Sequence record: MW057919.1
Strand: one strand, 5' to 3'
Length of the DNA stretch: 64,000 nucleotides
This document shows positions 11,912 to 56,486 of the stretch, piece after piece. Numbering within the stretch: the first letter of the stretch is position 1; each line of letters starts with the position of its first letter. The notes below the pieces were generated by a model. That model was not told where the DNA came from and did no database searches. It saw nothing but the letters and a program-made list of their open reading frames with translations. A program made the position numbers and the translations under genes.

Positions 11912-11967
11912 GCCTCCCTTCGGGGAGGCTTTATATCGTAATGAAAAAAATTTGAGATTTATATTAC
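11912..11967 (+). promoter_or_regulatory. Terminator + early promoter cassette
   Basis: GCCTCCC-ttcg-GGGAGGC (11912-11929), then AAAAAAATTTGAGATT-TATATTAC (core 11960-11967). Confidence 0.8.
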
Positions 11968-28478: not shown

Positions 28479-29579
28479 ATGAATTATCGTAATAGCAAAC
28501 TTACGTTAGTCCAGCAGAAGTGGATTGATCGTTTTATCTCCATTGCTATGGAGGTTGATAATGGCCGTGCAATTTCCAATGCATATCGCTATACTCTTAA
28601 TGAACAGGGAATTAGTTCAGATAGTGAAGATCTACGTATTCACTATCCTTTTGGAGTTGATAGAAAAGAATTCATCAAAGAACAAATTTACAAACTATGT
28701 GATGAAGTTATAAGCCCTTTAAATCTGAAAGCATTCAGAATTAGTGGTGGTTTTGCATTACTAGATGATGAAGGAATCATTGGTTTCCTAATGAATGGAA
28801 TGGAAGGTACCACTAGTCAGAACTTTAGATTATACTCCAATGAAGAACTGATCAAAGTATTTAAATTACGTTTTGAAGAAGTATTTGATCAGACTCGTCC
28901 ACCTAGTATTAAAAGAATTCGGGTTAACTATCAAAATAATGAACTATATAGCTTTAGTGAAGTTATTTCTGTTCGTAACTACAATCCAAATATGATGGAA
29001 ATGTATCCATTCCTAGATCGATCTCCAGCTGAAATCTGGACTGAATTCGCTGCATCTGAATCTAATGTTCTACTATTGATTGGTCCTCCTGGTACTGGTA
29101 AGTCTAATTATATCAATGAGATTATTCGGGCTCGTGGTTATAATGATCGTAATGTGTATCTAGCTGATCAAGATGATGTACTTGGCCACGCCGGTTTGAC
29201 TAATTTTATTCGTGGTGTTGAGGATAATTCACTCATTATTACAGAAGACTCTGATAAAATGGTGGCTAAACGTGTAGATGGTAATAGTAATATGTCAGGG
29301 CTATTAAATGCTACAGCTGGTCTAGTATCTACTAAGACCAAGATTATCATTTCTACTAATCTTCCGACTCTTCGTGATGTTGATGAAGCTTTAGTTCGAC
29401 CTGGCCGTGCTTTCGATATTCTTACCTTCAAAACACTTACTGCTGAACAAGCGAATGCAGCTCGTTTAGCTAATGGTCTAGATCCAGTTGAGTTTGTCGG
29501 TAATAATCTTACTTTAGCTGAAGCATTGAATACTAGTTCTTGCAGTAGCCCACGCAAAGCAAGTCGTGTAGGTTTCTAA
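28479..29579 (+). CDS. AAA+ ATPase, 366 aa
   Basis: Walker A GPPGTGKS, Walker B IITED, sensor STN, arginine finger ALVRPGR. Confidence 0.9.
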   Translation: MNYRNSKLTLVQQKWIDRFISIAMEVDNGRAISNAYRYTLNEQGISSDSEDLRIHYPFGVDRKEFIKEQIYKLCDEVISPLNLKAFRISGGFALLDDEGIIGFLMNGMEGTTSQNFRLYSNEELIKVFKLRFEEVFDQTRPPSIKRIRVNYQNNELYSFSEVISVRNYNPNMMEMYPFLDRSPAEIWTEFAASESNVLLLIGPPGTGKSNYINEIIRARGYNDRNVYLADQDDVLGHAGLTNFIRGVEDNSLIITEDSDKMVAKRVDGNSNMSGLLNATAGLVSTKTKIIISTNLPTLRDVDEALVRPGRAFDILTFKTLTAEQANAARLANGLDPVEFVGNNLTLAEALNTSSCSSPRKASRVGF

Positions 29580-34490: not shown

Positions 34491-34535
34491 GCCCTCCCTT
34501 CGGGGAGGGCTATTGCACTAAATTTTATTTGAGAT
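34491..34535 (+). repeat. 45-bp terminator + promoter-upstream repeat, copy 1 (promoter core degenerate TACATTAT at 34537)
   Basis: Identical to 49656-49700. Confidence 0.9.
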
Positions 34536-34588
34536 CTACATTATAGATTAGCATATACTAATGGAAACATCTACATGAGGTAATTATC

Positions 34589-40939: not shown

Positions 40940-41222
40940 TATCATGACAGTAATTATAGGTATTTTGTTTCTGATTATAATGATGGCTTTAATTAACTGG
41001 GGTTATTATGCCATCAAACACACGATAAAGTGTAACAGGCTTTATAAAGAAGCACTATCAATTATTGACAATATGAGTGATGGTTTATCTGAATACCAGT
41101 ATACAGTAGCTATTGGACGTTTACGTAAAAAGGCATACTCTATCGACCATTTAACTGCTGTTAAAATGTTTGAAGCATTAGACTTAGTTATTAAAGATAA
41201 GTCAAGAAAGAAAAATAAATAA
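40932..41222 (+). CDS. Membrane-anchored hypothetical protein, 96 aa
   Basis: N-terminal TM helix. Confidence 0.7.
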   Translation: MNDIMTVIIGILFLIIMMALINWGYYAIKHTIKCNRLYKEALSIIDNMSDGLSEYQYTVAIGRLRKKAYSIDHLTAVKMFEALDLVIKDKSRKKNK

Positions 41223-41230
41223 GCATAAAT

Positions 41231-41287
41231 AGGAGAGCTATTTAGCTCTCCTTTATTGCATTAAATTTTTTTTGAAATCTATATTAC
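41231..41287 (+). promoter_or_regulatory. Terminator + early promoter cassette
   Basis: AGGAGAGCT-attt-AGCTCTCCT; CATTAAATTTTTTTTGAAATC-TATATTAC (core 41280-41287); 30 bp identical to 56419-56448. Confidence 0.85.
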
Positions 41288-41323
41288 ATATTTGGTCAAG
41301 TCATATCAAAATAGGTAGTTATA

Positions 41324-41497
41324 ATGCTAGCATTACATTCACTACTATTATTAGTTATAGTGATTTGTTATATAATTCATAAGTGGTTGTGGTATACTTT
41401 CAATATGTTTAAACTAAAAGACATTATTAAAAATAAAGACAATTTAACTAATGATGAACTATTAAAATTACTCATTGATAAAATAAAGGCAACCTAA
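41324..41497 (+). CDS. Small membrane protein, 57 aa (not in track)
   Basis: MLALHSLLLLVIVICYIIHKWLWY...; AGGT RBS; TAATG coupling to next gene. Confidence 0.6.
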   Translation: MLALHSLLLLVIVICYIIHKWLWYTFNMFKLKDIIKNKDNLTNDELLKLLIDKIKAT

Positions 41498-41964
41498 TGT
41501 ATCCATTCTTTACAGGTAATGAGAAAGTTACTGTAGATGTTCTTGATGATAAACATAATCTACATAGAAGTTGGACTGATTATAAACATCCCATCACGAC
41601 GCGTGTGGACGGTAAACTAACCAATGTGTGGTATAAAGTTGAACCACCGATGAGTGCTAAGGATATTGAAAATAACTTTACAATTGACAAAGATAAAGTT
41701 AAATTATCTAATCGTTTGCACCAAGCTTTAGATGCAACGTTGATTAAAAATGAATTAGAAGAGTTTAACAAATTAATTGATCTATGCGTAAAACATGTTA
41801 ATTCAGTTAGTATTCATCTAGGTCTTACTATTTGGAAATTAGCAGATACTGTAAAATATGAAAAAGCAGATTTAAAGAAACTATTTAATGCACATTATAC
41901 CAAATCTACTGAACTTGTAAAAGAAAAGAATATAGTGCCCTCAGTAGAAGATATCTTCCTATAA
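41497..41964 (+). CDS. Hypothetical protein, 155 aa
   Basis: TAATG coupling. Confidence 0.75.
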   Translation: MYPFFTGNEKVTVDVLDDKHNLHRSWTDYKHPITTRVDGKLTNVWYKVEPPMSAKDIENNFTIDKDKVKLSNRLHQALDATLIKNELEEFNKLIDLCVKHVNSVSIHLGLTIWKLADTVKYEKADLKKLFNAHYTKSTELVKEKNIVPSVEDIFL

Positions 41965-41986
41965 TTTATTTAAAGGTAATACAAAT

Positions 41987-42895
41987 ATGCTAAAGGTAAA
42001 ATCATTACTCACTGGCCATATTCTTCGAGCTACCTATGATTGGTTTCTTGAGAATAACTTCAGAGATATTCTAATTGTAGCACATACTCAATTAGTACCT
42101 GATTTATCTGAGGTAGCTCTAAAGCATGCGAAAGAAGATCACACTATCACTTTCAATATCCATCCACGCTGTGCAAAGAATTTTTATATCAGTGACGAAT
42201 ATATCTCTTTCAATGTAACAGTAAATGGAGTTGGGGTCAGTATTAAACTTCCTCTTTATGCAGTATTGGGTGTAGTTACACCTATTGATGATAATTCTAA
42301 CGCATTCTTTGAAATGCCACTAGTAGATAGATATCTCAATGCAGATACTATTCGTGCAACATTAGAAGGAACTGTTAATAATGTAGTTGACAAAAACCCA
42401 GTATTAACTACCGTAGGTAATGTCACTGAGGTTAATTTTAAAAATAAAGCCGATACCACTAATGGTAAGTTAGTTGTAAGGAATACATCTGAGAATGAGC
42501 ATGATCAGATGATTGAAAGCGCCATTAACAGAGTAACTGAATTTAGTAATCCAGAATTAGATGCACATATTAGAGTAGCGGTAACTGTAATTAAACAGAA
42601 TGCACCAGAATTAATTATGGATTGGTGTGAGCGGGTTATTAATTGTACACGTAATGAAAACTATCAGGATAACATCAATGTACTTATGATGGAACTCCTC
42701 AGTTACCCTATTTCAAATGTGGTTAGTGAATCAACTGTGGACTCGGGTGATAATACATCTAATTCATTTGACAATGATGTAAATAAGATGGTTGAGGATT
42801 TCAATAATTCTTCCAATTCGCAGGTTATTATTAATAAACCTTCTCGTCCTACCGGTACACCAAAACTCACTGTTATTAAAGGTGGTAAGAAATGA
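41987..42895 (+). CDS. sspB: SspB-like ClpXP adaptor with long central insert and XB-like tail, 302 aa
   Basis: LRATYDWFLEN..ITFNI..YISFNVTVNGV...LPLYAVLGV..FFE aligns with the SspB core; C-terminal PKLTVIK resembles the SspB ClpX-binding PALRVVK. Confidence 0.75.
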   Translation: MLKVKSLLTGHILRATYDWFLENNFRDILIVAHTQLVPDLSEVALKHAKEDHTITFNIHPRCAKNFYISDEYISFNVTVNGVGVSIKLPLYAVLGVVTPIDDNSNAFFEMPLVDRYLNADTIRATLEGTVNNVVDKNPVLTTVGNVTEVNFKNKADTTNGKLVVRNTSENEHDQMIESAINRVTEFSNPELDAHIRVAVTVIKQNAPELIMDWCERVINCTRNENYQDNINVLMMELLSYPISNVVSESTVDSGDNTSNSFDNDVNKMVEDFNNSSNSQVIINKPSRPTGTPKLTVIKGGKK

Positions 42896-43149
42896 ATGCA
42901 ACTTTAGCAATTCTTTTTAGTAGTATCAGTATCGCTGGTTATCAAGCCAATGGTGCATCGCAGTCAACCGCTGAGTTCTCTGACATGGCTACTTGTTTTA
43001 GCGCGATTGAGCGCATTCAAAAACTAGCTAAAGCAAGTGCTATTCGTAATAATGTAGAGACTGTAAAAATCAGTGATGGTGTTCTATTACGTTATTTTTC
43101 TTCTAGTACTAGTAAAGTAGAACATACTCTAATCTGTGTAAATAAATAG
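42892..43149 (+). CDS. Small exported protein with two Cys, 85 aa
   Basis: Signal-like N-terminus; FSDMATC..A and terminal ICV motifs. Confidence 0.65.
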   Translation: MNATLAILFSSISIAGYQANGASQSTAEFSDMATCFSAIERIQKLAKASAIRNNVETVKISDGVLLRYFSSSTSKVEHTLICVNK

Positions 43150-43157
43150 GTACGGAT

Positions 43158-43865
43158 ATGTCTGAGAAAATGTATTTATCTTTTTCTGGAATTGGACACA
43201 ATGACGTAATCAAACAAGATCTTAATGGATTCGTTCCAATGGATGTATCAACTATTGATAATGAAGTGGCTGATCGATTATTTTATACTCCATTCAATAG
43301 TTCTGAACCAGGTACCTCATTACCTAATGTTGCTAATGTGGTATTCAAGGTATTACCTATCCATATCGAGGATAACACTATCTGTGTTTTAGATAGTTGT
43401 TCTAGTACCGAATACTCATTGAATGACTTAGTTGATACCAGTGTCTCATCATTAGAAACATATGGCCCATTAATAGATTTACGTAGTAGTGATCCAATTG
43501 AGACATATGCTAATCAGGCAGTGTATACTTGGTTAAATAAGAATATCTGTGATATCGAATTTGAAGTACATGGCGGGCTGCAAGTGCAACTAACTGCTGA
43601 CCAAGTGCGTTCCAATGTTAATGCATTTGTAGCAGGTATTGATCTTGACATCGACGATAAATTGATGGTATATGTGGTGATTAAAATCAATGATCGTTTA
43701 TACGATGCTTGGTCTAGTCAACATGTGGTGGAACCATTAACAATGTATCATGTGCAAGGTGGTCATGAGCCTATTGTCTATAGTGAGACCCATATTGAAA
43801 ATAGCCTATTGCGATATGCTAAAGAGAAAGGTTGGGCTGAAATTTTGACTCGTATTGGTCTGTAA
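43158..43865 (+). CDS. Hypothetical acidic protein, 235 aa
   Basis: AGG/GGA RBS. Confidence 0.75.
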   Translation: MSEKMYLSFSGIGHNDVIKQDLNGFVPMDVSTIDNEVADRLFYTPFNSSEPGTSLPNVANVVFKVLPIHIEDNTICVLDSCSSTEYSLNDLVDTSVSSLETYGPLIDLRSSDPIETYANQAVYTWLNKNICDIEFEVHGGLQVQLTADQVRSNVNAFVAGIDLDIDDKLMVYVVIKINDRLYDAWSSQHVVEPLTMYHVQGGHEPIVYSETHIENSLLRYAKEKGWAEILTRIGL

Positions 43866-43970
43866 TAAAAATACTTCTTATAGACTAATAATATAGGTAA
43901 GATACTAGCCGATTGGTTAGTTGCGCTTAGGGAGTCCTTCGGGACTCCCGTATATCGTCTAGGAGGTTTT

Positions 43971-44264
43971 ATGTATACAGTTACACTTGAACAAGTAGGA
44001 CACCGTATACCGTCTAGTTTAAGTGCTTTTGTAATTAGACCGTTTGAAAATACCATTACGCATAATGATACGTCTTATTACTTGATCATGGGTAAAGATG
44101 ATTTCGATAACATGCACATGGAATGGCGAGATGTAGCTGTAGTTGATAGTCAAGCCGTTATAGTTGCTACATACACTCCATCGAAAAACTCATTTAATCT
44201 TGTAAAAAATGAATTAGGTATTCCAGTTAATATCAAATACAAACGGATAGAGGTTGATCTATGA
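43971..44264 (+). CDS. Hypothetical protein, 97 aa
   Basis: AGGAGG RBS. Confidence 0.8.
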   Translation: MYTVTLEQVGHRIPSSLSAFVIRPFENTITHNDTSYYLIMGKDDFDNMHMEWRDVAVVDSQAVIVATYTPSKNSFNLVKNELGIPVNIKYKRIEVDL

Positions 44265-44291: not shown

Positions 44292-44492
44292 ATGGATCGT
44301 CTTGATGAAAGAATCGCATTCAGTGTAAAGTCGTACAAAATTTTCAATGCTCTCTCCCATGGCCGAGTTCGGGCATTGATTATTAACTTTAAAGATGGTA
44401 AGGGTACGATCGTATCTATTAGTGATGAGCGCCGCCATGATAAACATCTCTGGTTCAACTGTGGACTAGTAGACAATCCGAGGATCAAGTAA
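44292..44492 (+). CDS. Hypothetical protein, 66 aa
   Basis: GAGG RBS; TAATG coupling to thyA. Confidence 0.7.
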   Translation: MDRLDERIAFSVKSYKIFNALSHGRVRALIINFKDGKGTIVSISDERRHDKHLWFNCGLVDNPRIK

Positions 44493-45958
44493 TGGAACAA
44501 TATCTTAATTCAATCCGTTTAGTTAAAGAACACGGTGTACATAAAGGTGACCGTACTGGTACTGGTACTCAGAGCATGTTTGGTCAACAAGAACGTTATA
44601 GTCTGCGTAATAATCAGCTACCAGTTGTAACCACCAAGAAGATTCATCTAGCTTCTGTAATTCATGAATTGTTCTGGATGCTGTCAGGTGATACTAAGGT
44701 GGATTACCTGATCGCTAATGGTGTACGCATCTGGAACGAGTGGGTTAAACCTGAAACCGCAGTATATGAGCCGATGACCGATGAGGCCGTTCTTAAAGCA
44801 GTAACTGCCCTCATTGGTGCCCCATTCGTAATGTACTTACATTGTATGAACGATGACTCTACTCCATTCATTGAGACTGTAGCGGAATTCGAGTCGGGTA
44901 TGACTCCAGAGACTATTCAGGCCTTCTGGGATGAATATCCAGTTAACCGTGAGGAAATCCAATACATCATTGGAGTTAGCGTAACGTCGTGGAATAGGTT
45001 CGCTACTGAAGGGTTCGATGAAGCCAAAAATCCTGAAGGTATTCGTGCTGAATATAACAAGCGACTGTATCGTGCTTTGATGCATAAAGAACCAGAGCGT
45101 CTGGTCGGCGGCGATCTAGGTGCTGTTTACGGTAAGACATGGCGTAATCTTGAAGACACTCGTGTAATCCCTAAATATGAGTGGTTTGATTATGAGAAGC
45201 GTGGTTTTGACTTCGTGGCGGATATCCCAGGTACAACCATGGAAACCGATAGATGCGTGGTTACTCGACGTATCGACCAAATCCAAGACATCATCGATCA
45301 ACTTCGCACCAACCCGGATTCTCGTCGGATCATTGTTTGTGCATGGGCGCCACATCTTATTGATGAGCAGGCACTCCCACCTTGCCACGCATTTATTCAG
45401 TTCTGGACCCGTGAACTGACCGTAGATGAACGAGTGCAAGCTCTAGACCAAACCCAGTTCGAAGCTGATGCTTATCATGATAAGATTAGTGGTGAGATTA
45501 CTCGTGGTCAACCTCCATTCGATAGTGCTGAGCAGGTTAAAGCACTTCTGCGTGTCTGTCGTGGTTATGAAAAGGCTACAGATGAAGCAGTAGTAGAATG
45601 GCTGGATCAACATGGTGCTCCGAAACGAGCCATCAGTTGTCAACTCTATCAAAGATCTTGTGATACTTTCTTAGGAAAACCCTTTAACATCACATTCTAT
45701 AGTCTGCTGACTCACATGTTAGCTAACCAAATGAATATGATTGCTGAAGAGTTTATCTGGACTGGTGGTGATGTACATATTTACTCTAATCACCAAGAAC
45801 AGACTGATCTTCAATTAACTCGTGAACCGAAGGTTCTACCAACTATTCGTTTCAAACAAGAAGCTATTGGTAAAGATATTCGGGAAATTGGTGTAGATGA
45901 TTTTGTTATCGAAAACTACGAATATCATTCACACATTGCTGGTAAAGTTGCTGTCTAA
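44492..45958 (+). CDS. thyA: Thymidylate synthase with large insertions, 488 aa
   Basis: DRTGTGT, TTKK, ELFW, DLGAVYG..WR, SRRIIV, ALPPCH (catalytic Cys), YQRSCD..LG.PFN, GDVHIYSNH. Confidence 0.95.
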   Translation: MEQYLNSIRLVKEHGVHKGDRTGTGTQSMFGQQERYSLRNNQLPVVTTKKIHLASVIHELFWMLSGDTKVDYLIANGVRIWNEWVKPETAVYEPMTDEAVLKAVTALIGAPFVMYLHCMNDDSTPFIETVAEFESGMTPETIQAFWDEYPVNREEIQYIIGVSVTSWNRFATEGFDEAKNPEGIRAEYNKRLYRALMHKEPERLVGGDLGAVYGKTWRNLEDTRVIPKYEWFDYEKRGFDFVADIPGTTMETDRCVVTRRIDQIQDIIDQLRTNPDSRRIIVCAWAPHLIDEQALPPCHAFIQFWTRELTVDERVQALDQTQFEADAYHDKISGEITRGQPPFDSAEQVKALLRVCRGYEKATDEAVVEWLDQHGAPKRAISCQLYQRSCDTFLGKPFNITFYSLLTHMLANQMNMIAEEFIWTGGDVHIYSNHQEQTDLQLTREPKVLPTIRFKQEAIGKDIREIGVDDFVIENYEYHSHIAGKVAV

Positions 45959-45965
45959 CATAAAT

Positions 45966-45983
45966 GCCTCCCTTTGGGGAGGC
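45966..45983 (+). terminator. Terminator
   Basis: GCCTCCC-tttg-GGGAGGC + TTTATTT. Confidence 0.8.
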
Positions 45984-46091: not shown

Positions 46092-46499
46092 ATGAACAAC
46101 ACTGAACTGAAGCGTCAACTTGAAATGGTTATTGAACTGATGGGGGTCTTTCCTGATCCTCTCACGATCGGTATCGCCGGTAATAGAGTAACCAAAGAAA
46201 CTCGCTGTAGCCTTTTTAACGGAAAAGATCCAGGTGAAGAGTTTAGTATTGGTCTTGGTATCAGTAGTCGCAAACAATGGTTGAAGCTTGCAGATCATGC
46301 ACTGATTCTTACTAAGCCCGAGAAAGAGCCTATTGTCATCCCGTACGAGGCTATATGCGAACTATCGGCACCACTGAAATTCGAAGAGGAACTTGTGAGC
46401 AAAGGTTGGTTTGTATACAACTTGCTGGGTACATCGATGTTCATGTATCTGGACACAGGTAAAGAAGAAAAACTCAAATTTGAAAAGGTTGGTGGATAA
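46092..46499 (+). CDS. Hypothetical protein, 135 aa
   Basis: AAGGA RBS; coupled to next gene. Confidence 0.75.
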   Translation: MNNTELKRQLEMVIELMGVFPDPLTIGIAGNRVTKETRCSLFNGKDPGEEFSIGLGISSRKQWLKLADHALILTKPEKEPIVIPYEAICELSAPLKFEEELVSKGWFVYNLLGTSMFMYLDTGKEEKLKFEKVGG

Positions 46500-47332
46500 T
46501 GGATCCACGGCATCCAGTTAGCGACGAAATGCGCGCAATCATCGATACTGAACTTAATCGCATCGAGAAGAAGTATGGTGTAAAAGTCATCTATGCCTGT
46601 GAGTCCGGTAGTCGCGGATGGGGCTTTGCTTCTATCAATAGTGACTATGATGTTCGTTTCATTTATGTTAACCATCCGAGTCATTATGTTCGTGTGGATA
46701 ATGAAGCACGTGATACTATTGAAGAGATGGTGTCTAAAGAACTAGACCTAGCTGGTTGGAGTATCACTAAGACTCTTCAGCTTGCTTACAAGTCTAACCC
46801 CACTCTCTTGGAATGGCTAAACTCCCCAATCGTTTACCGTAAGGTTGATCGGGACTACAAGTTAATCCGTGATGCTGCGCTAAAGCACTTCATCCCTGAA
46901 TCGAGTTACATGCATTATATCTCGATGGCCAAACAAACCAAAATGCGTTGGTTGTCAGATGAGAAAGTCCGGATGAAGAAATACTTCTATTCTCTTCGTC
47001 CTCTGTTGGCTGCAATTTGGGTCCGTGAAAGTCTGGAACATCCACCGATGGTATTCCATGATCTACTGCCTCTTCTAACAGATCCTATCCTTTATAAACG
47101 TATCCAAGAACTGGTTAATGATAAGGTTGGGGCTACTGAACAGGATCTGATAGATCGTTGCCCTATATTAGATCAGTTCATCGATTTTCAATTGAGTCGT
47201 GAGAAACCAGACTTCGGTAAATACGAACGTCCGGACATCTATGCACTTACCGATCTAGCCTGGCATTTTGTTGACCAGTACAAGATCGACACATTCGCGA
47301 AACTACAGGGCATCGAACGAAGAAAATATTAG
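46499..47332 (+). CDS. Pol-beta superfamily nucleotidyltransferase (RlaP/YcgL-like), 277 aa
   Basis: ACESGSRGWGFASINSDYDVRFIY (GS..DxD), KSNPTLLEWLNSPIVY, KKYFYSLRPLLA. Confidence 0.85.
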   Translation: MDPRHPVSDEMRAIIDTELNRIEKKYGVKVIYACESGSRGWGFASINSDYDVRFIYVNHPSHYVRVDNEARDTIEEMVSKELDLAGWSITKTLQLAYKSNPTLLEWLNSPIVYRKVDRDYKLIRDAALKHFIPESSYMHYISMAKQTKMRWLSDEKVRMKKYFYSLRPLLAAIWVRESLEHPPMVFHDLLPLLTDPILYKRIQELVNDKVGATEQDLIDRCPILDQFIDFQLSREKPDFGKYERPDIYALTDLAWHFVDQYKIDTFAKLQGIERRKY

Positions 47333-49655: not shown

Positions 49656-49709
49656 GCCCTCCCTTCGGGGAGGGCTATTGCACTAAATTTTATTTGAGAT
49701 ATATATTAC
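49656..49709 (+). repeat. 45-bp terminator + promoter repeat, copy 2, with intact TATATTAC (49702-49709)
   Basis: 49656-49700 identical to 34491-34535. Confidence 0.9.
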
Positions 49710-49754
49710 ATGTGTGTATTACAAAATCAAATTAATGTGTCGAGGTTTTAATAG

Positions 49755-56391: not shown

Positions 56392-56447
56392 ACCCTCTCC
56401 TTTGGGAGAGGGCTTTTACATTAAATTTTTTTTGAAATCTATATTAC
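56392..56447 (+). promoter_or_regulatory. Terminator + early promoter cassette
   Basis: CCCTCTCC-tttg-GGAGAGGG; CATTAAATTTTTTTTGAAATC-TATATTAC (core 56440-56447). Confidence 0.85.
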
Positions 56448-56486
56448 ACTAATACAACATTAAACTATTAAATAGGTAATTAAAAA

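Follow-up and report, generated by a model that had tools for sequence, protein, structure and literature searches.

The 64,000-nucleotide stretch of sequence record MW057919.1 analyzed here (the window) is DNA of a phiKZ-type Pseudomonas phage: over positions 41000-44000 it shares 100% identity with phages kmuB, MKR2, and PA7, and 99.9% with the phiKZ reference. At positions 41987..42895 of the plus strand, on which the genes, the hairpins, and the four 26-nucleotide repeats described below also lie, a single open reading frame (ORF) runs from an ATG to a stop codon and matches the reference gene for PHIKZ232 (NP_803798.1 of Pseudomonas phage phiKZ) base for base. Its product of 302 amino acids (aa) is a homolog of SspB, the bacterial adaptor of the ClpXP protease, and the genes around it are packed tightly and all face the same direction. 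A predicted SspB-fold substrate-binding domain (aa 1-127; 41987..42367), comprised of a helix (aa 8-22), a beta sandwich (aa 29-109), and helices at aa 113-127, is followed by a segment rich in Thr, Asn, and Val (aa 128-168; 42368..42490), modeled with low confidence and predicted to form a beta hairpin at aa 139-150, a four-helix bundle insert (aa 169-238; 42491..42700), and a disordered polar and acidic linker (aa 239-289; 42701..42853), in which a short predicted helix (aa 265-272) ends in D271-F272. The chain closes with a motif resembling the ClpX N-domain-docking peptide of SspB, recognized by its matrix score and its conservation (aa 290-298; 42854..42880), and, directly after it, a GGKK extension (aa 299-302; 42881..42892). 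An earlier note, made from the letters of the sequence, had proposed that this gene encodes an early phage adaptor that redirects or jams the ClpXP of the host.

The assignment of the N-terminal domain to the SspB family is based on both sequence and predicted structure. A phmmer search of the Protein Data Bank (PDB) matched aa 11-110 to the SspB structures 1ox9, 1yfn, 8et3_Y, and 1ou9 (E 1.4e-8 to 5e-7), and the protein also matched nine NCBIfam models named "ClpXP protease specificity-enhancing factor" (best E 3.9e-13), Pfam SspB (PF04386; E 6e-5), and PHROG 8945, "SspB-like" (E 2e-4). A profile of 12 jumbo-phage homologs matched SspB chains over the whole domain, with E values of 2e-16 to 7e-15. 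In an AlphaFold2 model built from an 87-sequence alignment, the predicted local distance difference test score (pLDDT) was 93-97 over aa 11-120, and the 13 best PDB matches of this model in Foldseek were all SspB (probability 1.00; target template modeling (TM) score 0.74-0.83; root-mean-square deviation 2.6-3.6 Å), with alpha-proteobacterial SspB orthologs next in the ranking. The near-invariant SspB family positions W19, N57, F75, G81, and P89 are present. Judged from the sequence and the predicted model, aa ~8-127 of PHIKZ232 constitute a genuine SspB substrate-binding-domain fold; profile search and Foldseek are thus in agreement with the core alignment claimed in the earlier note, which had named an N-domain of another fold as grounds for refutation. 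Weak matches of PHIKZ232 to FUR and phrog_20304 were not significant.

For comparison of the C-terminal region with bacterial SspB tails, a position matrix was derived from the nine final residues of those bacterial-type SspB matches (53 in number) that end in the usual hydrophobic and basic pattern of the ClpX-binding (XB) motif. On this matrix aa 290-298 score 14.3 bits, within the range of the training tails (7.5-25.7 bits), and no other of the 20,599 9-mers encoded on either strand of the window, in the 132 ORFs that reach 60 aa or more, scores as high. When PHIKZ232 was shuffled 5000 times, the score was attained in just 6 cases. The XB pattern is kept column by column, with P292, L294, V296, and I297 followed at 298 by a residue that is basic or polar, and the threonine of PHIKZ232 at the column where arginine or lysine is commonest is also found in 11 of the 53 bacterial tails. 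In the AlphaFold2 model the linker and tail have low pLDDT, and, as in SspB, a long linker precedes a tail that is predicted to be disordered. A phmmer search of the PDB with the tail alone returned no SspB or XB entry, because the peptide is too short. On the strength of this comparison, aa 290-298 appear to match the XB tails of bacterial SspB in a variant form. The XB-like motif is internal in PHIKZ232, since four residues (GGKK) end the chain, and non-terminal XB motifs also occur in some bacterial-type matches. The XB motif has been reported to bind the zinc-binding domain of ClpX whatever its position in the polypeptide, and, when fused internally, it bound with a dissociation constant (KD) of ~65 nM (PMC12373786); given this independence of position, the GGKK extension need not block docking. 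The SspB of the host Pseudomonas aeruginosa (135 aa) binds ClpX via its last eight residues with a KD of 27 nM (PMC13251409). The docking-like tail of the earlier note is therefore retained with modification: the quoted end of the protein stands, but the motif is not C-terminal and carries a variant threonine.

The N-domain and the tail are also the parts of the protein that are conserved among phages. Full-length relatives were found only in the genus Phikzvirus, where 47 GenBank records carry the gene at 98% identity or more with an intact ORF in every case, and in one metagenomic protein (P0002; 61-64% identity). Identity between PHIKZ232 and P0002 is 77% in the N-domain and 88% in the tail, compared with 53% in aa 113-170 and 44% in the helical insert, and all six substitutions in a 98% identical variant (P0001) lie within aa 158-256. 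Domain-specific purifying selection on PHIKZ232 is thus evident at the level of sequence. Distant homologs that keep the N-domain and tail, with a middle part of very different length, are present in many nucleus-forming jumbo phages, including PhiPA3 (gp270), BRkr, Psa21 (gp299), D6, RVTF4, Phabio (gp349), Serratia phage Moabite (gp200), Klebsiella phage FBKp24 (gp126), PhiEaH1, 201phi2-1, Noxifer, and Erwinia phage Rebecca. In an alignment of 13 tails (those of 12 jumbo-phage homologs and FBKp24 gp126, from phages of Pseudomonas, Serratia, and Klebsiella at 15-29% identity to PHIKZ232), I297, G299, and G300 are present in all 13, K301 in 12, and L294 and V296 in 10. The D-F pair at 271-272, ~25 residues upstream of the motif, is kept in eight of 12 jumbo-phage homologs. 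Identity of PHIKZ232 to any bacterial match is ~25-38%. Matches in the BFVD database indicate that 201phi2-1 (B3FJK8, B3FJL0) and Aeromonas phage phiA8-29 (A0A1W6DXU6, A0A1W6DY71) each apparently have two SspB-fold proteins, and one protein of these pairs is 373 aa long.

In a neighbor-joining tree of the N-domains, which are short and very diverged, the 13 phage sequences formed one bipartition in 0 of 60 bootstraps, whereas sub-clades were recovered in 60 of 60. The phage clade is therefore not resolved by the tree, and the case for common descent is made by the tail and by synteny. The SspB-like gene lies a few genes upstream of a thymidylate synthase gene in phiKZ, BRkr, PhiPA3, Phabio, and two metagenomic contigs (L004 and L005). 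It is then followed by an overlapping ORF of 80-85 aa in phiKZ, BRkr, and the metagenomic contigs, whereas this ORF is shorter in Phabio and none is annotated there in PhiPA3. In D6, Psa21, RVTF4, and Moabite, the SspB-like gene does not have this position upstream of thymidylate synthase.

The region between the N-domain and the tail differs greatly among these phages. In phiKZ, the AlphaFold2 model places four helices at aa 169-184, 189-205, 207-218, and 226-238 (pLDDT 86-93), and the bundle folded alone gave a pLDDT of 86 and a predicted TM score of 0.73, in accordance with the helical insert described in the earlier note. No structural relative of the bundle was found in the PDB (best Foldseek E 2.4), and no sequence relatives of the insert beyond the metagenomic proteins P0002-P0004 were detected among 1.84 billion representatives; the bundle is confined to proteins of the phiKZ genus and P0002. 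The linker was likewise described correctly as acidic and flexible, as aa 244-285 contain 7 D+E, 2 K+R, and 19 N+S+T and have low model confidence. A marginal 69-residue match of aa 129-197 (42371-42577) to the staphylococcal superantigen-like protein SSL7 / exotoxin 1 (PDB E ~1e-3; NCBIfam NF009887, E 5e-6) was also obtained. Kinship with the SSL7 fold was rejected: the segment has a pLDDT of ~43-52, no SSL structure is found among the 50 listed Foldseek matches, and the OB (oligonucleotide/oligosaccharide-binding) / beta-grasp fold of SSL proteins is not supported for PHIKZ232. The similarity is probably compositional.

The gene is expressed early in infection, as the earlier note had supposed. 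About 700 nucleotides upstream of PHIKZ232 lies a 26-nucleotide AT-rich promoter-like repeat (41263..41288), further copies of which are found at 49685-49710 and 56423-56448 without mismatch and at 34520-34545 with two mismatches. These four copies in the window, against zero expected by chance, are all intergenic and in the same orientation, and several are immediately preceded by a GC-rich terminator-like hairpin. One such hairpin between PHIKZ230.1 and 230.2 (41231..41252; nine pairs, five of them GC), just upstream of the promoter-like motif, probably marks the end of the preceding transcription unit. Looser copies that have the 8-mer core in common with it are located at 11960, 25754, 49270, 52776, and 59125. 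The early promoters of phiKZ have been described as AT-rich and as containing a T-rich element plus an extended -10 (PMC8244752), and the repeat is probably, as far as its sequence indicates, an early promoter for the virion RNA polymerase that drives a unit comprising gp230.2-231-232 and continuing to gp235. The next strong terminator-like hairpin on the plus strand is at 45966..45983, after the thymidylate synthase gene; PHIKZ232 is therefore probably within the unit from gp230.2 to gp235. In a published proteomic time course, 0, 10, 10, and 10 PHIKZ232 peptides were detected at 2.5, 5, 7.5, and 10 min in the control, and 0, 6, 9, and 10 at the same times when the non-virion RNA polymerase was knocked down (PMC12571901). 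The presence of peptides by 5 min, without a need for the non-virion RNA polymerase, identifies PHIKZ232 as an early protein.

Published data also bear on where the protein acts and on whether it is needed. An mNeonGreen fusion of PHIKZ232 was diffuse and outside the phage shell, and size-exclusion chromatography-mass spectrometry (SEC-MS) of infected cells detected the protein enriched with the shell fraction (PMC10449902). The homolog of phage RAY is cytoplasmic (PMC10299810). Transposon insertion sequencing (TnSeq) recovered 22 and 43 insertion sites in the 909-bp PHIKZ232 gene, and the authors regard the orf184-304 region, which holds it, as largely non-essential and probably related to host interaction or defense (PMC12676376). 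PHIKZ232 is thus dispensable in the laboratory, and its role would be accessory, in host takeover or counter-defense, rather than in core replication.

PHIKZ232 probably engages the ClpXP of the host, as its domain layout and tail suggest. The favored reading, which we hold tentatively and consider to fall only a little short of an even chance, is that it docks on ClpX and retargets ClpXP to cargo held in its diverged groove or helical bundle. A feasible model may be that the early virion-polymerase transcription unit yields PHIKZ232 within the first 5 minutes of infection, and that the protein stays in the host cytoplasm, where the XB-like peptide would tether it to the zinc-binding N-domain of host ClpX in the manner of SspB. 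The diverged groove and, in phiKZ, the helical bundle would hold cargo other than, or besides, ssrA-tagged proteins, and this cargo would be carried to ClpXP to be unfolded and degraded. Occupancy of the ClpX N-domain might also displace host SspB and other N-domain-dependent substrates.

Several observations weigh against this reading. Curated family cut-offs are missed, with 23.5 bits against a threshold of 27 for Pfam and at best 49.7 against 202 for NCBIfam, where every equivalog cut-off is missed; PHIKZ232 is thus a divergent SspB homolog, not an equivalog. In 76 bacterial-type sequences, 43 columns (a set defined by conservation, not by position in the groove) show conservation of 50% or more; PHIKZ232 keeps the commonest residue at 19 of them and differs from it at 24. 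The departures include positions 10, 11, 26, 27, 44, 52, 62, 77, 100, and 105, and several of the diverged columns are conserved at 79-88% in the bacterial-type sequences. Strong conservation on the surface of SspB is reported to be confined to the dimer interface and the ssrA groove (PMC9963277); this divergence therefore makes canonical ssrA binding doubtful and even dimerization uncertain, and at the level of sequence it points to an altered peptide specificity. The XB-like motif scores below the median of the bacterial tails (14.3 versus 20.2 bits). Furthermore, the Gly-Gly-Lys that follows it is strictly conserved in the phages and is found after the XB motif in none of the bacterial-type matches with a bacterial context, the only other carrier being a protein (P0021) on a small, phage-like contig of short unannotated ORFs, and this strict conservation suggests a constraint that the XB model leaves unexplained. 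Finally, no link between PHIKZ232 and ClpX is reported in the available portion of the SEC-MS interaction study (PMC10449902).

PHIKZ232 might instead be a blocker of ClpX rather than a deliverer of cargo, an explanation that we consider possible but rather unlikely. The XB-like tail, of which a dimer would offer two, would saturate the ClpX N-domain early in infection and halt adaptor- and N-domain-dependent proteolysis, namely that of host SspB cargo (for example, the MucA fragment), of ssrA-tagged proteins at low concentration, and of other N-domain substrates. This might shield phage proteins from ClpXP; alternatively, the groove might sequester tagged peptides without handing them over. 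Blocking and retargeting draw equally on the tail motif and its conservation, a diverged groove is in keeping with a protein for which the ancestral cargo has become unnecessary, and early synthesis suits a protective shut-off. In addition, free XB peptide is known to inhibit SspB-stimulated degradation as well as degradation of lambda O and FtsZ via the ClpX N-domain (PMC3983244). However, a mere tail carrier would not need the N-domain, which is as conserved as the tail when P0002 is compared, shows no substitutions among the Phikzvirus variants, and keeps its fold-defining residues across the phage family. The insert in the linker and the conserved D-F helix likewise suggest extra specific contacts.

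A further explanation, which we regard as decidedly unlikely, is that the SspB fold has been reused as a peptide-binding module and that the tail addresses a partner other than ClpX, such as a phage AAA+ machine (BCS1-like) or a component of the phage-nucleus surface, its likeness to XB being a partial relic. The Gly-Gly, the near-invariant Lys, and the D-F pair are phage-specific and absent from the 76 bacterial-type matches. In D6 (L008:5352-6731), Psa21 (L009:5314-6678), and RVTF4 (L013:4915-6291), the second gene downstream of the SspB-like one encodes a BCS1-like AAA+ ATPase (Pfam BCS1_N plus AAA), whereas phiKZ has no adjacent AAA+ gene, and the only match in the window to the D6 AAA+ protein is a weak tblastn hit ~13 kb upstream (~29064-29408). 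In the SEC-MS study, PHIKZ232 is one of six shell-enriched proteins absent from virions, but the same source describes the fluorescent fusion as diffuse and not bound to the shell (PMC10449902). The tail may also occur on other proteins: 105 viral stretches in IMG/VR encode the tail pattern, five of which were confirmed as relatives of PHIKZ232, and the other ~100 may encode very divergent SspB-like proteins or unrelated proteins with the same tail. Against this reading, the core of the motif (P292, L294, V296, I297, and position 298) tracks the bacterial XB pattern, and ClpX is present in the hosts of all these phages. That PHIKZ232 is merely what is left of an sspB gene captured from a host, decaying and without function, is highly improbable, for despite its dispensability in laboratory TnSeq and its scores under the curated cut-offs, the ORF is intact in all 47 Phikzvirus genomes, the protein is expressed (~10 peptides), purifying selection is domain-specific, homologs are retained in many jumbo-phage genera, and the sequence is not host-like in the way that pf16 gp18, with 51% identity to bacterial matches, is.

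The favored reading, that PHIKZ232 docks on ClpX and retargets ClpXP, can also be set against known systems. Bacterial SspB proteins of Escherichia coli and Haemophilus influenzae (1OX9, 1OU8, 8ET3) have the same substrate-binding-domain fold and the same layout of a folded N-domain, a disordered linker, and a short hydrophobic and basic ClpX-docking peptide near the C-terminus. They are, however, 125-180 aa long rather than 302 aa, lack the four-helix bundle and long linker insert, and end with the docking motif, whereas GGKK follows it in PHIKZ232. Unlike them, PHIKZ232 is a protein of a virulent phage and is synthesized early. A second comparison is with the jumbo-phage SspB-like group (PhiPA3 gp270, RAY gp039, Psa21 gp299, Phabio gp349, Moabite gp200, and FBKp24 gp126), which has the N-domain and tail columns in common with PHIKZ232 and, in the case of RAY, the cytoplasmic location, and several members of which already bear SspB-like annotations; these proteins range from 144 to 318 aa with a hypervariable middle, and the phiKZ bundle is absent from them and, outside the genus, known only from P0002. 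For another phage-encoded SspB homolog, gp18 of the Pseudomonas putida T4-like phage pf16, interference with the SspB, anti-sigma, and ClpXP circuits of the host has been proposed (PMC5587285). By contrast to PHIKZ232, with its much greater divergence, additional domains, and extended tail, gp18 is host-like, with 128 aa, an identity of up to 51% to bacterial-type sequences, and a canonical terminal XB tail.

Similar arrangements have been engineered. Synthetic XB degraders (CLIPPERs / GroTACs) and split-SspB tools likewise combine a target-binding module, a linker, and an XB anchor, and an XB motif at any position tethers a degron-less protein to ClpX and can cause its degradation (PMC12373786). 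CLIPPERs and GroTACs are engineered peptides, whereas the target and the ClpX binding of PHIKZ232 are putative. Jumbo phages also encode ClpS adaptors and homologs of ClpP and ClpX (PMC7824862), and phage ClpS adaptors set a precedent for parts of host AAA+ protease systems in jumbo phages, although ClpS, an adaptor for ClpAP, belongs to a different family from SspB, which is not mentioned in that study. It is also tempting to speculate, although we consider it unlikely in this full form, that there is a docking code private to the nucleus-forming jumbo phages, composed of the XB-like strand, the Gly-Gly-Lys, and the D-F helix, on what would be a natural degrader with an SspB scaffold and swappable middle modules. 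Such an early cytoplasmic protein would recruit host ClpXP against host defense, stress-regulatory, or antitoxin proteins, with the phiKZ bundle serving in target recognition.

The neighbors of PHIKZ232 were checked as possible partners. An 85-aa ORF downstream (42892..43149) overlaps the stop codon of PHIKZ232 in the sequence ATGA; it is intact in the window and matches PHROG 32080 over all 85 residues of the latter. RefSeq phiKZ has a one-base difference at this ORF that creates one in-frame stop, and thus two short coding sequences (PHIKZ232.1 and 232.2) are annotated there. PHIKZ231, the 85-aa ORF, PHIKZ233, and PHIKZ234 have no Pfam families and belong to orphan PHROGs only, and the phiKZ neighbors show no detectable similarity to the like-sized neighbors in BRkr and L004 or to the differently sized ones in D6 and Psa21. 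The thymidylate synthase PHIKZ235 (44492-45958) is 488 aa long, and long counterparts are likewise encoded by related jumbo phages (447 aa in BRkr and 376 aa in L004), which suggests lineage-specific insertions in this enzyme. Further downstream, PHIKZ237 (46499-47332) is a RlaP-type nucleotidyltransferase (Pfam PF10127, E 1.9e-89). Its homolog in phage BRkr (L002:10990-11814) lies near an RtcB RNA ligase gene, a neighborhood that points to an RNA-repair module.

The likeness of this gene family to SspB is not new. A similarity to stringent starvation protein B has been noted for PhiPA3 gp270, the GenBank records of Bobae and Churi give this name to a protein identical or nearly identical to PHIKZ232, and RAY gp039 is also annotated as SspB-like. 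On the other hand, the literature searched contains no description of the statistical match between the tail and XB, taken together with the Gly-Gly-Lys that invariably extends the tail in jumbo phages, of the hypervariable and modular middle that in phiKZ includes a specific four-helix bundle, of the divergence of the conserved SspB surfaces, or of the link to the early-expression and TnSeq data. As the gene is dispensable and its SspB likeness is already in databases, the present value of these results lies in a sharpened, testable hypothesis rather than in a discovery, and the Gly-Gly-Lys extension, the hypervariable middle modules, and the diverged groove provide handles for structural and proteomic work. 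If the tail docks on ClpX, phiKZ-like phages would carry an early adaptor that retargets or blocks a central protease of the host while the phage genome is shielded in its protein nucleus. Such an adaptor would be the equivalent in nature of the synthetic XB-based degraders, and would represent a new class of host-takeover or counter-defense proteins in phages that are used for P. aeruginosa therapy research.

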